A stretch of DNA of 63,602 nt, filler included, from Olpidium bornovanus S191 (Eukaryota; Fungi; Olpidiomycota): assembly GCA_017911155.1 (NCBI GenBank). It is 29 parts of 29 records of this genome, joined end to end, with 100 filler letters (N's around TTAATTAATTAA, not from the genome) between each part and the next. Parts side by side here need not be neighbours in the genome. Positions count along the whole stretch, not along the records: positions 36,587 to 37,871 come from JAEFCI010001519.1; positions 37,972 to 40,291 come from JAEFCI010011274.1; 27 more parts are not named here. The stretch is one strand, 5' to 3'. The first letter of the stretch is position 1. Every line of letters starts with the position of its first letter. Positions 13,203 through 40,291 of the stretch are shown one piece after another. A model generated the notes under the pieces. That model made no database searches and was not told the DNA's origin. It was given only the letters and a program-made list of their open reading frames with translations. Both the position numbers and the translations under genes were made by a program.

Positions 13203-14258
13203 GGACAGCCGCCGGTCTCCACGGCGCGAATCCGCTCTGGCGGAAGTGCCTGGTTCCGGACCAGGAACCTGGTTCGGGGAATTTCCGCTCGCACATCAAA
13301 CGGAACAGTTCGCCAGGTCTCGCCAAAGAAAATGACGAAGCTTCCTTCTGAAGTTCAGGGAAAGAGAAAGGAACAAAAGCGATTCGCGCGGCAGAAAATT
13401 AAACTCACTCGGTGTCCTCACGCGTGAAGATGTCGTTGGTAACGCACGCGAGGTTGTAAGAGTCGTGTAGGGCGCGGCATAGCGCCAAGCAGAGGGCAGT
13501 CTTCCCTGCGGCGAATTTTGACGGGCGGCCGCCTCACGTGAGCAAATTGCTTCGGCCCAGATTGTCAGCGTTCCGAAATGTGCCGACCGCGCGGGAAACA
13601 TGTGCGTTGTGATTTTGGCCGTCCGGACACGCAGCCAGCGCAAAAACCCCGGCAAACATCGTTTGGTCGCAATCTTACCGCTGCCTACAGGACCGCCGAT
13701 ACCGACGGTGAACGCCCTGGCACGCAAAAAAATAAAAAAAAAAAATAAAAAAAAGAAAAAGGAAGGACAAACGGGGAGAAAGAAGGGAGTGATAAACCGG
13801 TTGGCCAGCCGCGAAAGAAAGCACGAACGAGTCAGCTTCGACAAACTGGGGGGCCTCCACTTGCTTCCCGGCTTCCTGTATCTTTCATCCGGCATTCTAG
13901 GTAATTCTATTTTATATATTTTTTGTATGTTTTGACGAGAGCACGCCGCGCTCGAACGTGGAACGCACCTCTCGGCCCAGTTCCGCTCGCTGTAGAGCGG
14001 CACGGGCCTGTTCACGTATCTGCCGGGATGTTCAAGAACCTCGTGGGTGTGGCCGTGGTCGTGGGCGTGGTCGTGGGCGTGGTCGTGGGCGTGGTCGTGG
14101 GCGTGGTCGTGGGCGTGGGCGTGGGCGTGGTCGTGGTCGTGAGGGTGGCCGTACGCGGCCTGCGCCGCGTACACGCTCCCCTCGTCCTCCAGCGGGCCGC
14201 GCACCTCGAAGCGGCACACATCCTGCTTGGTCGGCAGGCTCTCGACGCCGGTGTCCAT
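13203..14258 (-). CDS. ureG: Urease accessory GTPase UreG, eukaryotic His-rich type (3'-partial)
   Basis: Spliced exons give [10 protein letters not shown]...[14 protein letters not shown] / [33 protein letters not shown] / [21 protein letters not shown], with canonical GT-AG junctions. Confidence 0.97.
14043..14147 (-). repeat. Coding His repeat in UreG (18 His alternating with D/A/P/G/T)
   Basis: Five exact copies of GTGGTCGTGGGC (14055-14114) plus 6-bp variants. Confidence 0.95.
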
Positions 14259-14330
14259 GTCTAGCGCCCCGCGTTCGCGGGCGGCTTTTTAGTGGTCCGT
14301 TGCGGGGAAGAACGCGCGCGTTTGGGCGAG

Positions 14331-14374
<44 letters not shown>

Positions 14375-14603
14375 AGAGGGGGGGGGGGGGGGGGGGGGAG
14401 GAGCGGANNNNNNNNNNNNNNNNNNNNNNNNNNNNNNNNNNNNNNNNNNNNTTAATTAATTAANNNNNNNNNNNNNNNNNNNNNNNNNNNNNNNNNNNNN
14501 NNNNNNNGGCCAGAGATAACATGCTTGTCTATGGCCTTCCCTGCCAGCATCCACTTACAGCCCACAACTCTGCATTCGACACCGCCAAACAATCATTTTC
14601 AAG

Positions 14604-14655
14604 TGCAAGGTATCTCTTTTGTACAGATTTGCAAGGTATCTCTTTTGTACGGATT
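14604..14655. repeat. 26-bp tandem duplication
   Basis: TGCAAGGTATCTCTTTTGTAC(A/G)GATT twice, at 14604 and 14630. Confidence 0.9.
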
Positions 14656-14940
14656 GACGTTTGTAGAACTGTATGAAGTAGTTAGCAAAACTACGGTAGC
14701 TGTTTTTTTCTTTGCAAAAACGTGATAGCTGATTTTTTTCTTTGGTAATTGTGTGCAATTTCCGGCTACGTAGTGGTAAGGTGTGCTGTGGCACGGCCCT
14801 CCAACCGCCCGTCGACCGACGCCACGGAAGGCGGGCGGCAGGCGAAGGACGGCGGGCGCAGGGCAAAGGGCGAGAGGCGGTCGAAGAGCAGAGGCGGAGG
14901 CGGGATCGAGGGCAGGATGGCCCCCGAACCCGGGGGCCGA

Positions 14941-15247
14941 CCAATAGAATAATCCCCCTCGAAGCCCGCCAATCAAAGAGCTCTTCCCCCCTTCCCCCCT
15001 CGAAGCCCGCCAATCGAAGAGCATTTTCCCTTTCCCTTTTCCCCCCCCAGCGCCACACGCGGGAACCCCCGTTAACCATAACCCCCCCCCCTCCCCGACT
15101 GCCCCTTGCACCCCACCGCACGAGAGCGCGGAGCCCCGCGTGGTAACCGCGCGGGAAGGGACCGGACGCACCGCGTCGACAGACGTGACGTCGAAGGACG
15201 GCTTTGACGTCGACTGACCTCCGCTCGACGTCGACGAGCATAAATAG
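14941..15247 (+). promoter_or_regulatory. Putative promoter-like motif cluster
   Basis: CCAAT at 14941, 14969 and 15010 (the latter two inside a duplicated CCCCTCGAAGCCCGCCAATCRAAGAGC). GACGTCGA at 15187, 15206 and 15228. CATAAATAG at 15239. Function is inferred only. Confidence 0.3.
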
Positions 15248-15484
15248 CGTCCCTTCCGCTCCATAGCTCGACTTCGAACACAACAACGGCCTTTCCCCTT
15301 TTACTTTCCAATCGTCTTCGATCAAACTTGCCCTCGTCGACCCTCGTCACCTTACCTGTAGCACCCTGCTCAGACCTGACGAGGAAGAGGAATACAACGC
15401 TGTGAACCTTGCTGCAGTACATAAAGTGGTTCACACAGCGGGACACCACTGCTGCTGCTATTCGTTTTCAGTTAATCTGGCTCG

Positions 15485-15555
15485 TTCGGCTGACCCGGCT
15501 GGTTTGGCTGGTTCGGCTGACCCGGCTGTTTCGGCTGACCCGACTGTTTCGGTCC
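15485..15555. repeat. 18-bp tandem repeat (TTCGGCTGACCCGGCTGK), three copies plus a 9-bp half unit
   Basis: Visible directly. It preserves frame and encodes GSAETAGSAEPAKPAGSAE on the minus strand. Confidence 0.9.
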
Positions 15556-16457
15556 TAGTAATGTCGAGTGGAGTTAGATTGAATTCCTTCGAAAGGTTGC
15601 TGTTCAAGAAACACAAAATGTCGCTCGTACCAACTGCAACTTTTTTGGGGGTCGTCCGAAACATTGATGACCGTCTGGGCTTTGCGCGTATCTTTTTCGT
15701 CAGACGAGATCACAATCACAGGCGCCTTTTGTTGCACCTTTGGATTTTCTTTTTGGTGCCATTTCCCGTGTTTTGTTTTTTTTTATCGGCGATCGTTCTG
15801 TTTTTTTTTTCTGTCAATGTGAGCTGGTTCAGTGGTCGGAGGTTTAATTTGATGTTTGGCGCCGGTGGATCACGAAGGAATATCAGACACTGCACGCGGA
15901 TGCGCCCACCAGGCGTGCAAAGCAAACCAGATGTGACGTGCTCACCCACCAGAGGTTGTAAAGATCTTTCCTTTTTTTCGCGTTTTTGGCTGTCGTTGAC
16001 TGGGTTTTTTTTGGTTTTGACAAACGGTTGATATCGGATGCTGGGGGTTTTTTTTTTTGACGAAGACTTGATGTCAGAGGTTAAATAGTCTACCTACGAC
16101 GCAAACATGTCACGCTTCTAAAGTTTTCTTACCGTAACTCATTTGTTGTTACAACGCGTAAAATAAAAAGTTGAGGTAAAGAAAACCGTAGCTGTAGACG
16201 CCTCTTTCGTTACTTTGTTCCCTGACCGTGTACTTTCCCGCACACAGAAATGGCCGAAGAAGACAACGACGTTCAGCAACAACTCAAGGTGTTAAAAAAA
16301 CAACGCGAACCGCGTTTTTTTGAGCAGCGACGGAAGTCGTGCTGGAAGAAGCGGTCANNNNNNNNNNNNNNNNNNNNNNNNNNNNNNNNNNNNNNNNNNN
16401 NTTAATTAATTAANNNNNNNNNNNNNNNNNNNNNNNNNNNNNNNNNNNNNNNNNNNN

Positions 16458-16517
<60 letters not shown>

Positions 16518-16665
16518 CGTCGCAACTCCCGGGTCCCTGAGTGAAAAAAAAAGGGAAAAGTCAAGAAGTCGTCGTATAAAAAAGAACCCGCGTCGCGCGC
16601 GCGCACGAATCAACAGCCCGCGGTTGCCCCGCTGCGATTTGCTGCGTCCCGGTTCTCCCTCAGCC

Positions 16666-17479
16666 ATGGTGGCGAAGAGTAAGTTTCCGGTTATGCCGCC
16701 TCGCTTTTCCCCACCTCTTCCGGCCCCTCCCGGCGCCGCGAAACGGTGACTTGTGCGGCGCGCTCCGCCCGCCTCTCCCCTCAATTCCCTCCCCGGCCCT
16801 ATCTCCGTGCGAGCTGCCTTTGACGCCTGTCTCGCGGCGGCCTGTTCGACGGCGAACAGTGCTAACAGCGGGCCATTTCTTGGCCTGGGGTGAACCTTCT
16901 TGTCGCCGTTTCCCTGGTCGAACCCCCTGTGGCTTGACGTCGCGGGTTTTTGCTGGGGGCCAAAAGTTTTGCTCGACTAGCGGTTTTGCGTTGTTTCTCA
17001 AAACCCTAACTTTTTGTCGGTTGTATTTCCTTCTCGTCGTGTGGGACGGACCCGCTTTTCCCCCGCGCAGAGCACAAGAGCAAGCGGATGAAGTGTTCGA
17101 CGAAGTACCGGATAACGAAGCAGGCGGCCGAAAAGCGCCGCAAGGACAGGAAGGAGGCGAAGAAGAACCCGAAGAAAAAGAGTACGCCGTTCGTTTGCCC
17201 TCCCGCGCTCTGCCCCGTCCCTCCGTCGTGACCGTCCTGTCCCCCCCACCCCTTTTTCTTTCCGTGCAAACAGAGGCGAAGAAGGACCCAGGGATTCCTG
17301 CAAACTGGCCGTTCAAAGAGGAGCTCCTGCAACAATTGGCGGAGCAGAGGAGAGAGGAGGAAGAAACGAAAGCCAGAGAGCGAGAAGAGCGGGCAAGGCT
17401 GGCCGCGAAAGCCAGACAGCAAAAGGAGCGAGCGCGGCAGGCCTCGCGCGTCCCCCGTGAGCGCCCGTCTACGGCGTGA
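16666..17479 (+). CDS. GNL3/Nug1/Grn1 N-terminal domain; GTPase domain not found
   Basis: Exons 16666-16678, 17071-17181 and 17274-17479 give MVAKKHKSKRMKCSTKYRITKQAAEKRRKDRKEAKKNPKKKKAKKDPGIPANWPFKEELLQQL, followed by a coiled coil and TGA. KDPGIP..PFKE is the GN3L_Grn1 signature. Confidence 0.8.
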
Positions 17480-37620: not shown

Positions 37621-39750
37621 CACACAACACACACGCGCTGCGTTGCGGCGTGCAGGCCCACACCGCCCCCTTGCCTGGTGTGGCCAGCCCCCCCCTTGGC
37701 ACGTGGCGGCCCCACGCAAGGGGCCCCACACGCTCGGCGTGCCCGCGCAGGGGGGCACACCAGCACGCCCGGCGCACCCACGTGGAATCACGCATAGGAT
37801 TCCCACGCTGCCGAACGACCTGTGTGCACAGCGCGCCTACACACAGCGTGCCCGTGCACGGCACGCCCATGNNNNNNNNNNNNNNNNNNNNNNNNNNNNN
37901 NNNNNNNNNNNNNNNTTAATTAATTAANNNNNNNNNNNNNNNNNNNNNNNNNNNNNNNNNNNNNNNNNNNNCATGAGATTATTGCGCTGTTTGCGTTTGA
38001 ATAAACGGGGGCGATCTCGTCAGTTGCGCGCGGCCGCGGCATCTTCTTTGGCGAGTGCGGGTGCGGGGGCGAGAGAAGAGCCGGGGAGCAGGCGGCGCCT
38101 TTTATACCCGGGAGGAAAGTAAGCAAAAGCCTCCGCGGGTCACGGGAGGGCGACTCCCCGGCGTCCCCTGCTCGCCGGGCCCTCTCCCCTCCCCACCTCC
38201 TCCCCGGGCCCCGGTCGCCGGGACGCCCTCCGCTTCCTGGTGCTGACTCGCCAAGCTCCAGGTGAGGCGCCCCGTTACCGCCCTTCCCTCCACCCCAGAA
38301 GGGCCCTCCCTTCCAACCCCCCCACACGCAGCAAAGTACACGCGCGCCGGATCAGGAAAGCCTTTTTCGCGTCGAACTGAGCAAGCGCACGTCCTCGTTT
38401 TCTTGCCTTTCGCTGCGTTCGGTAAAATATCAGGATCACGTGCTTCGCGCAACTTCTCTTCGACGCTTGAGGAACAAGCATTTTCGACAAGATAGGTCGA
38501 TGTGGCTTTTGTTCTTGGCGGCGGTTAGGTTCAGTGGCGTAGGCGGCCGCCCAGTGCAGCACCGCGCGCGCCTTAGAAGGACACGCGGTGTGACCACTGC
38601 AGCGCGCCCTCTGCCTTATCGCCCCCTGAACGCCCATGGGGAACCCTAGGCGGTCAGGGTGAGGCGCAAAGATCGGGGGGGCGACGGCGCGTGGTCAGCT
38701 GGAGAATCTTCGCACATTGATCCCAGCCGGCCAGCCTTTTCCAGCGGTTCCTCTCGGAACTGTGTTATTGAGGACACGACGCCATGAGTTCCGAGTTTCC
38801 CGGGAAAGGCCCACCCCGAAACCACTGAACCGAACCGCTGCCTGGCTAACAGATGCCGCAAGTTTTTCTCCAGGAAGTGGTTTCTTTTCTCGTCAGGGGT
38901 TTCTTTTCCAAAAAAGAAAAGGGAAGCTTGTCAAACACCTCCACGTGGTGCTTCCTGGGCAACGGTCTCTGCGGTAGTTCGCATAACCGGCTAAGTTTGA
39001 CATTCCGGGCTCGGGTATACGATCGAAACAGTTGCATCCCGCGGGGCTTGAAGTTTCGTAGTGTAGGAAAGTTTTGGACTTTTTTCTTGCTGTCAACCAT
39101 TTGAGTCTTCCCAATTGCCAGATCCAATAAAAGATTATGTTTCCTCTTTCAAACGTAATCCGCAATTACTGCCCTTCTTCCCGTCAAACATCTAAGGCAT
39201 CGCCATGTCTGTTCAAATCTTGTCGGAATCATAGTGACGTAAGAATGGCCCGGCCCGTTAGCACGCGCTCAAGGTTGCAATCCCTTGACAACTAAAGTTT
39301 CTGATCCTTGAAGACGACACCGTTGACAGTTCCGTGGGCGTCGGCCTTACGAGGCCTACACACATTTACGCGTCCAACAAAAAGCGTATGGTGATTTTGG
39401 ATGGACTGCCCGGATCGGCGCGTGCCACATGTTTGCTGAGAATGCTGCGGCATCTTTCAAGAGCCACGACGAGAACGAAGGCGAAATGCGTACAGATATG
39501 CCAGTCGGTCATGGAGGCCAGTTCAGAACCGTGCAGCCCCAAGCATCCATTCCTAAAGCCCTAAGGCTGCTGCCGCCACCTGCGGTTCCTGCTGCTGCCG
39601 CTGTCCCCCAACTAAAAAAAATCTGACTATACCCGATCATCTGCTGGACTCCCGTTTTAACGCACTTGAGCAGTGTAGTGGTTCGCCGAAGGTTTGTTGT
39701 GTATTAAAGGGGGACCCGGGACGGTTTACGTACTCGGGGAGAGGTCACGT

Positions 39751-39955
39751 GATCGAAGGAGAGCGGATCGAAGAGACAGAGTGCGGATCGAAGGAGAGCG
39801 GATTGAAGAGGAGCGGGATCGAAGGGACAGAGGGCGGATCGAAGGAGACTACGGTCGGATCGAAGGAGGCTACGGTCGGATCGAAGGCGAACCCGTACAT
39901 CGGGATCGAAGGCGAGGGGCTATGGATCGAAGTCGAAGGGGTTATGGATCGATCC
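39751..39955 (+). repeat. Array of 11 (G)GATCGAAG-core repeats with variable spacers
   Basis: Cores at 39751, 39766, 39786, 39801 (GATT variant), 39817, 39837, 39858, 39879, 39904, 39925 and 39947 (degenerate). Confidence 0.9.
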
Positions 39956-40291
39956 ACTACAACAAACGCACTGTGGATGACTCCACGAATCACCTTGGCA
40001 CAGGATACACTAAACCGGTTGAACAAGGCAGGATTAAACTTTGTAAATTATCGTACCTACACGACTGGGAAAAAAAAGGCTGGTAAACCAGAGAGGGACA
40101 GTAACAATGTCATATGGAGCATTCAATCGTTGCACTACATCCAGGAAAATTACGATTTAGTTATTATCGATAAATCCGAAACTGTTTTTAACACCTTTGC
40201 CAAAGATTGCAAAACGCACAAAAAGAATCTCACCGTGAATTGGAATATTTTCAAAAGTTTAATCACGAATGCTACCCAAGTTATCTGCATG
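39944..40291 (+). mobile_element. Replication origin-binding protein (UL9-like SF2 helicase) fragment, probable endogenous viral or mobile-element sequence
   Basis: Ordered motifs LWMTPRITLAQDTLNRL (Ia), VIWSIQSLHYI (Ib), YDLVIIDKSETVFNTF (Walker B position), WNIFKSLITNATQVICM (leading to motif III MDA). Intronless and about 39% GC by hand count, against a GC-rich host. Confidence 0.7.

Follow-up and report, generated by a model that had tools for sequence, protein, structure and literature searches.

A headless gene, very probably a Polinton-like virus primase-helicase remnant, beside an unexplained direct-repeat array in Olpidium bornovanus

A window of 63,602 nucleotides from the fungus Olpidium bornovanus S191 (GCA_017911155.1), made up of 29 records joined end to end, was analyzed, and the piece at positions 37972-40291 (about 2.3 kb, from JAEFCI010011274.1) is described here in whole-window coordinates. 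This piece holds 1.8 kb of DNA of differing composition (37972..39750, no strand assigned), a candidate self-cleaving ribozyme of the hepatitis delta virus (HDV)-like class (38921..39002, + strand), an array of 11 direct copies of a short core (39751..39954, + strand) and, running to the edge of the piece, part of a UL9-like helicase gene (39932..40291, + strand). A preliminary description made from the sequence alone had taken gene and array together for an undescribed system, in which a relic of an endogenous DNA virus or self-replicating element had kept its replication origin in cis next to its initiator gene. We find that 39932-40291 is very probably a truncated remnant of a Polinton-like virus (PLV) primase-helicase gene.

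The stretch at 39932..40291 was recognized by phmmer and tblastn as a 5'-truncated primase-helicase remnant which retains the N-terminal lobe (N-lobe) of a UL9-like superfamily 2 (SF2) helicase, motifs Ia to III. An exhaustive HMMER (phmmer) search of the fragment against 1.84 billion representative proteins returned 169 relatives at E≤0.001, of which 48 also reached E≤1e-10. Its best matches (P0001, E 1.5e-33; P0002, E 2.9e-33) were 58-59% identical. Nearly all of these relatives were 900-1100 residues long. The fragment was aligned by phmmer to residues ~396-546 and corresponds overall to about residues 390-545 of them, and those of about 1000 residues were 54-59% identical to it over residues 389-504. 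Alignment with 24 full-length relatives showed the fragment to be collinear with P0001 residues 389-504, beginning after motif I and continuing through motifs Ia to III, so that the SF2 motif order first proposed was borne out. Three of the four invariant family columns and nine of the ten nearly invariant columns were kept, and the 116 codons contained neither a stop nor a frameshift. The low-GC open reading frame (ORF) of the preliminary description was also present, open from a GTG at 39749 to the edge and with 35%–40% G+C in its helicase part, compared with 52%–72% upstream. Close copies of the fragment were not found in IMG/VR or in the JGI metagenomes, and a word-indexed protein search with the 116-residue fragment returned nothing in its length band.

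When 40 relatives were compared with the piece by tblastn, homology began at 39932-39971, exactly at the end of the array, and the first approximately 385 residues of the relatives had no match upstream in any frame. The point at which homology begins lies just past the P-loop (motif I) of the relatives, and no Walker A P-loop pattern was found in the six frames of 37972-39980. The 3' side of the fragment is cut by the edge of the piece at 40291 and the rest of the gene may lie downstream of this position. A single break has removed the entire N-terminal part of the gene, and what remains shows little decay. Interruption of the gene by a long intron was rejected as unlikely, since the chytrid relatives whose coordinates were checked (e.g. 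L003) are single uninterrupted ORFs. Intact relatives are proteins of about 1000 residues in which a primase-like N-terminal domain is followed by the UL9-like helicase. With both the P-loop and the primase-like domain gone, the product of the copy in the window would be expected neither to hydrolyze ATP nor to prime DNA synthesis, and this copy would be a dead fragment of an endogenous viral element and not an initiator.

Searched alone against Pfam, the fragment gave only a match to PF00270 (DEAD) which was below threshold (E 0.0076, 16.4 bits vs a cut-off of 26), and no match to PF02399 (Herpes_ori_bp) above the curated cut-off. No PDB sequence was matched at E≤10, and a PHROGs search returned nothing. 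The likeness of the fragment to UL9 therefore comes from its full-length relatives and not from the fragment directly. Pfam Herpes_ori_bp was passed by 12 of the 24 relatives (best E 1.7e-24), and P0001 matched PF02399 with E 1.2e-15 (57 bits vs a cut-off of 20) over model positions 47-207 of 820. A family profile searched against the PDB retrieved only chains named 'Replication origin-binding protein' (E ~1e-18). An AlphaFold model of P0001 (mean predicted local distance difference test score, pLDDT, 83.7) was compared with the PDB by Foldseek, and the top four matches were to the herpes simplex virus 1 (HSV-1) origin-binding protein (OBP; E 3e-16 to 6e-13); generic SF2 helicases came next, from 3e-10 onward. 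The UL9-like assignment thus held by way of the full-length relatives (PF02399, PDB and fold), while for the fragment by itself it stayed below the Pfam threshold.

UL9 (HSV-1 OBP; PDB 9hgi, 9hgj) is the closest solved relative by profile (~1e-18) and by fold (3e-16), but the match spans only the helicase N-lobe, at 12%–14% identity, and UL9 is without the N-terminal primase domain (PMC11253617). A primase-helicase composed of an archaeo-eukaryotic primase (AEP) and a UL9-like SF2 helicase has been described for Nucleocytoviricota and mriyaviruses, of the mimivirus R8 / African swine fever virus (ASFV) F1055L type (PMC11253617). The relatives share the two-part build of these giant-virus proteins, approximately 390 N-terminal residues and then the SF2 helicase, and the P0001 model aligns with them over 1000-1200 columns (E 1e-34 to 1e-20). 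They differ in being only 13%–16% identical to those proteins and in being encoded by 14-25 kb PLV genomes, and the copy in the window differs further in having no N-terminal domain altogether. Among BFVD models, the best match to P0001, with a clear lead, was an unnamed protein of 922 residues (A0A0A0RKB1, E 2.5e-56, 23% identity) which probably comes from a described PLV or virophage-like genome. The named BFVD matches were whole-length matches to giant-virus proteins (superfamily II helicase, replication origin-binding, DEXDc helicase-primase and PrimPol-helicase), and herpesvirus proteins ranked lower. The N-terminal regions of seven relatives had no Pfam primase match, and the primase-like domain is regarded as putative, on the grounds of fold and literature (PMC11253617).

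In NCBIfam, the translation of 39944-40291 gave a weak match to CyRepA1, a cyanobacterial plasmid replication family (E 5.5e-6, 25.5 bits vs a cut-off of 200), which may point to a remote connection of UL9-like helicases with some plasmid Rep proteins. Membership of the fragment in CyRepA1 was set aside, as tblastn searches for relatives in 72,556 plasmids and 50,697 phages were empty.

All named relatives come from chytrids of the Spizellomycetales and Rhizophlyctidales (Spizellomyces, Powellomyces, Gaertneriomyces, Geranomyces, Phlyctochytrium, Thoreauomyces, Borealophlyctis and Rhizophlyctis), often with several per genome, and a further 53 loci in IMG/VR encode relatives, mostly on contigs of 14-25 kb. 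On five metagenome contigs (L006-L010) the neighbors of the helicase gene encode an integrase (rve+Chromo), a Pox_A32 packaging ATPase, a cysteine protease, an HNH protein and conserved proteins of no assigned function. The structural model of one helicase neighbor of 406 residues (P0188, pLDDT 84.9) is a double jelly-roll, and its fold matches the major capsid proteins of Singapore grouper iridovirus (SGIV), Paramecium bursaria chlorella virus 1 (PBCV-1), Sputnik and others (E 1e-16 to 1e-12), with SGIV and PBCV-1 the best. Capsid, ATPase and integrase genes were likewise located by tblastn within 10 kb of the helicase in loci of Rhizophlyctis, Phlyctochytrium, Powellomyces and Spizellomyces. 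Because its members sit among capsid, A32 ATPase and integrase genes, we regard the family as a replication gene of PLVs. The data support a viral and not a core cellular origin of the relatives' gene, as had been proposed, and place it in PLVs and not in herpes-like or giant viruses. That the locus is the relic of an endogenous DNA virus also finds support here, in that the relatives lie in virus-like elements with capsid, ATPase and integrase genes. PLVs integrated in Spizellomyces punctatus and other chytrids have already been published (PMC7805220; 10.64898/2026.06.19.733378). The relatives resemble this group in that no more than 10 kb separates the helicase from genes for the capsid, the A32 ATPase and the rve integrase, a gene set which recurs in the metagenome contigs, whereas the window shows one headless piece of a single gene.

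A single peptide pattern searched in 185,579 prokaryote genomes gave one locus only (L212, CBCXTS010000015.1), a 21-kb contig with helicase and integrase in an alphaproteobacterial metagenome-assembled genome (MAG), and one capsid homologue (P0194) was labelled as coming from an Acidimicrobiales MAG. Both are probably contigs of eukaryotic viruses which were misbinned with bacteria.

Several other features were observed beside the helicase genes of chytrids. In Phlyctochytrium (L003) the gene is flanked by DNA methyltransferases at 2219-3019 and 7732-8610, of the D12-class N6-adenine and EDM2-like types, and in Spizellomyces (L005) by a C5 DNA methyltransferase at 13527-16752. In Powellomyces hirtus (L004) two tandem repeats, of 208 nt x 3.5 (13192-13923) and 124 nt x 2.6 (14123-14433), lie 250-1500 nt past the helicase. 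Every core of the window array contains a GATC site, and a link between these sites and the flanking methyltransferases is speculation.

The array at 39751..39954 consists of 11 direct copies of the core GATCGAAG, in most of which a G stands before the core. Nine copies are exact and lie at 39751-39932, all on the + strand, where 0.14 would be expected and none of 100 shuffles reached nine; the other two are degenerate, GATTGAAG at 39801 with one mismatch and GATCGATC at 39947-39954 with two. The 11-copy array of the preliminary description is therefore real. The start-to-start spacings are irregular (15, 20, 15, 16, 20, 21, 21, 25, 21 and 22 nt) and are not multiples of three. Core identity among the ten clear copies is 97.5%, while the spacers of 7-17 nt are 52% alike against a shuffled-spacer baseline of 46%. 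With Tandem Repeats Finder, sub-arrays with periods of 15, 20-21 and 22 are distinguished, and unit pairs 1/3, 2/5, 6/7 and 9/10 are recent duplicates. The + strand of the array is purine-rich, with a GC skew of +0.36 to +0.49. The mechanically called ORF from the GTG at 39749 to the edge of the piece crosses the array, which is also open in a second + frame (39694-40086) and in a minus frame (39745-40026). These open frames arise from the purine-rich composition and not from coding, and the array has the character of non-coding DNA. Contrary to what had been suggested, the gene does not start inside the array, since homology to the family runs only from 39932-39971. A 12-nt inverted repeat around the array, considered as a transposon end or stem, was dropped because nine such pairs occur in the same 2.3 kb.

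The composition scan divided the piece into a block of 56%–72% G+C at 37972-38870, a middle zone of 44%–57% which extends to about 39950 and has the array as its 3' end, and a zone of 35%–40% from about 39950 to the edge of the piece. In the DNA upstream of the array (37972..39750, 44%–72% G+C) no coding sequence was recognizable. It held no ORF longer than 135 amino acids, and ten of its ORFs had no significant Pfam match (best E 0.028, below threshold), with no match to a reverse transcriptase, a transposase or any other coding sequence. Comparison of this DNA with 63 relatives' loci by tblastx and blastn gave nothing below E 0.1, and neither these comparisons nor Pfam revealed any PLV gene other than the helicase in the 2 kb upstream. 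The upstream DNA is probably host DNA or belongs to another element. By eye, a TATA-like stretch on the + strand at 38095-38270 is followed by a C-rich block of 70% G+C and a splice-donor-like CAG/GTGAGG; as judged in this way, the region resembles a eukaryotic promoter with a first exon.

Such a boundary could be produced by an assembly chimera in which GC-rich DNA of the host was linked to an AT-rich viral contig at or near the array. This would fit the fall in G+C from 57% to 35%–40% within approximately 150 nt at the end of the array, the abrupt start of family homology at the same place and the lack of internal decay in the fragment. A chimera usually needs a repeat which is common to both partners, however, and there is no sign of the array on the viral side. 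We consider a chimeric join to be highly improbable.

To the preliminary reading of the array as an iteron-type replication origin, kept in cis beside the initiator of an endogenous DNA virus or self-replicating element, several features lend themselves: 11 conserved-core copies lie on the same strand about 1.5-2 helical turns apart, the core is conserved far above the spacers and the adjoining gene is of a UL9-like family. About 200 nt of same-orientation repeats beside a gene of a replication family also resembles the iteron arrays of plasmid and viral origins. Unlike these, the window array has a core of only 8-9 nt and an irregular spacing of 15-25 nt, and the gene beside it is not an intact initiator, having lost the P-loop and the N-terminal domain. 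In addition, the array takes the place of the 5' part of the gene and does not stand ahead of the gene start, and its composition is that of the upstream DNA and not that of the AT-rich viral gene. UL9 itself binds a few specific boxes in oriS and oriL via its C-terminal domain, not long direct-repeat arrays, and to our knowledge origin binding has not been demonstrated for the primase-helicases of PLVs and giant viruses.

Linkage of gene and array was examined in 64 loci (883 kb) which encode relatives of at most 59% identity and come from organisms other than that of the source assembly. GATCGAAG was found 19 times in these loci, against 27 expected, with a maximum of two per 300 nt, and in none of the 64 was the gene accompanied by a GATCGAAG array or by a non-coding array of any iteron-like kind. 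Screening for 8-mers which occur at least five times in 300 nt revealed short-repeat arrays in 17 loci, six of which were examined closely. Five of the six lie inside long open frames; four of these have spacings divisible by 3 or 9, as is characteristic of coding repeats, and the fifth (L170) is in the same open frame as the helicase match. The sixth (L179) is a plain three-unit tandem repeat. Thus of the usual marks of an iteron origin, several same-orientation direct repeats sharing one conserved motif are present, whereas an intact initiator gene beside the array and array-gene linkage among relatives are not. The authors of the preliminary description had named as fatal to their reading the case in which the array never lay beside other copies of the gene, and in the loci of these relatives it never did. 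An origin kept in cis by its initiator is very improbable given a headless gene, an array at the break and no linked locus among the 64, and the array is likely not the replication origin of the viral element.

The array sits at the break, on the side of the upstream DNA, and does not travel with the helicase family, and for this reason we infer that it belongs with the DNA upstream. It would have been part of host DNA or of another mobile element, and would have been joined to the truncated viral gene by an insertion or rearrangement. A core of 8-9 nt which is nearly invariant, while the spacers around it differ in sequence and length, is the pattern expected for clustered binding sites of some sequence-specific protein.

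Alternatively, the array might be a neutral compound minisatellite with no binding function, whose place at the break is a coincidence or the by-product of a rearrangement. Neighboring units are closest to each other (the pairs 1/3, 2/5, 6/7 and 9/10), which fits local duplication. The sub-arrays of differing period also favor this reading, and tandem repeats containing GATCGAAG are common in public data. A pattern of two GATCGAAG copies gave only matches at chance level, and with a pattern of three, 29 arrays were recovered from IMG/VR and at least 120 from JGI metagenomes. Most of these public arrays differ from that of the window, being constant-period or coding repeats; among the metagenome matches listed, spacing is constant in 93 of 120 and in multiples of three in 80 of 120. 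No array with the flanks of the window was present among the IMG/VR and JGI metagenome matches listed. Neutral decay should also strike core and spacers alike, whereas here the core is kept and the spacers are close to their shuffled baseline. A conserved core between unrelated spacers therefore argues against purely neutral minisatellite decay and favors a cluster of binding sites, and we regard a neutral origin as doubtful. From its sequence pattern, the array may be a putative binding-site cluster which grew by local duplication.

Two of the public arrays, on IMG/VR tailed-phage contigs of 65%–69% G+C, are non-coding and have 8-9 copies of GATCGAAG at variable spacing (L082 2855-2982 and L085 4993-5097). 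The first adjoins a small-terminase gene (Sf6_terminase) and the second lies upstream of capsid-protease genes. These arrays may be terminase-binding or other protein-binding repeats, and they are unrelated to the helicase family.

The ribozyme candidate at 38921..39002 lies 750 nt upstream of the array on the same strand. It gave full-length matches to Rfam families RF02682 (the HDV-F-prausnitzii type of bacteria and phages; 37.6 bits vs a cut-off of 44, E 8.3e-5) and RF00094 (38.3 bits vs a cut-off of 50, E 0.0022), both below the gathering cut-off and with E-values which refer to the 2.3-kb piece. The nested double pseudoknot is complete, with P1 (7 bp), P1.1, P2, P3 and P4, and 27 of 27 listed pairs are standard. 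P2 is a 7-bp pseudoknot which lies outside the model score and has a chance probability of 4e-4. The candidate has a G.U at the cleavage site and a C in J4/2, and cleavage is predicted directly 5' of G38921, where an A-rich tract immediately precedes the site. HDV-like ribozymes form the 5' ends of the RNAs of several families of retrotransposons which lack long terminal repeats (non-LTR retrotransposons). L1Tc is an example of such an element (PMC3185411). The candidate resembles the ribozymes of these retrotransposons and of RF02682 in its nested double pseudoknot, G.U and J4/2 C, and differs from them in falling below both Rfam cut-offs and in having no retrotransposon coding sequence downstream. 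An Rfam scan gave no rRNA match which would indicate the ribosomal DNA flank of an R2-like element. A phage theta-type setting, with a tRNA beside the ribozyme, was also discarded, as no tRNA was found in the upstream DNA. The ribozyme core (the P3/L3 stretch and GGGCAAC) occurs exactly in ten IMG/VR contigs (L202-L211; nine are 18-127 kb long and the tenth is 17 kb), and these matches are likely phage HDV-like ribozymes of the theta type.

A structurally complete ribozyme candidate of a class which heads several families of non-LTR retrotransposons raises the possibility of a nested insertion, in which a second mobile element landed in the viral helicase gene, with the array as the terminal or subterminal part of that element. 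This element could be a retroelement, with the 5' end of its RNA made by the ribozyme at 38921 and the short repeats at its 3' end, or a larger transposon with subterminal protein-binding repeats and its other end beyond the piece. The sharp break in composition and homology at the 3' end of the array and the conserved core with variable spacers are both as such an insertion would leave them. Had a simple insertion of 1 kb taken place, however, the DNA immediately upstream of 38921 should contain the missing 5' part of the helicase, and it does not. Nor did 37972-39750 give a match to a reverse transcriptase, a transposase or any other coding sequence, and the IMG/VR and JGI metagenome matches listed include no further copy of the array in the same flanking sequence. 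A nested insertion is in our view unlikely.

Weighing these results together, we think it reasonably probable that both parts of our interpretation hold, namely that the gene is a truncated PLV primase-helicase remnant and that the array is not its origin. Several points tell against this joint interpretation. A core which is kept while its spacers have diverged points to function, and with only 2.3 kb in view the array may have a function for the viral element. The absence of linkage was established with relatives of at most 59% identity from other organisms. Finally, a fragment with no stops and with 12 of 14 conserved columns kept is well preserved, so that the break would be recent, or possibly an assembly join. 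It is improbable, on this evidence, that the array is a cis site of a virus-derived element at which a viral or host protein is loaded for replication, packaging or integration.

If the array were such a cis site, the locus would be a reduced, non-autonomous PLV derivative in which only the site and a helicase stub were kept, perhaps with transcription from upstream and trimming by the HDV-like ribozyme, and the array would be the first such site for PLVs with a UL9-like primase-helicase, for which none is known to have been described. Were array and ribozyme instead both to belong to a single mobile element, its build would be one not yet described. On our preferred interpretation, a truncated PLV gene beside an array of other origin, the locus is an ordinary endogenous-virus remnant with an unexplained array, and thus an element of a known kind. 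What had been proposed as an undescribed system is mostly explained as one more broken PLV remnant. For the family as a whole, sequence, fold and gene neighborhood identify the UL9-like primase-helicase, found on 53 contigs of IMG/VR and in eight or more species of chytrids, as a common replication gene of the 14-25 kb PLVs.

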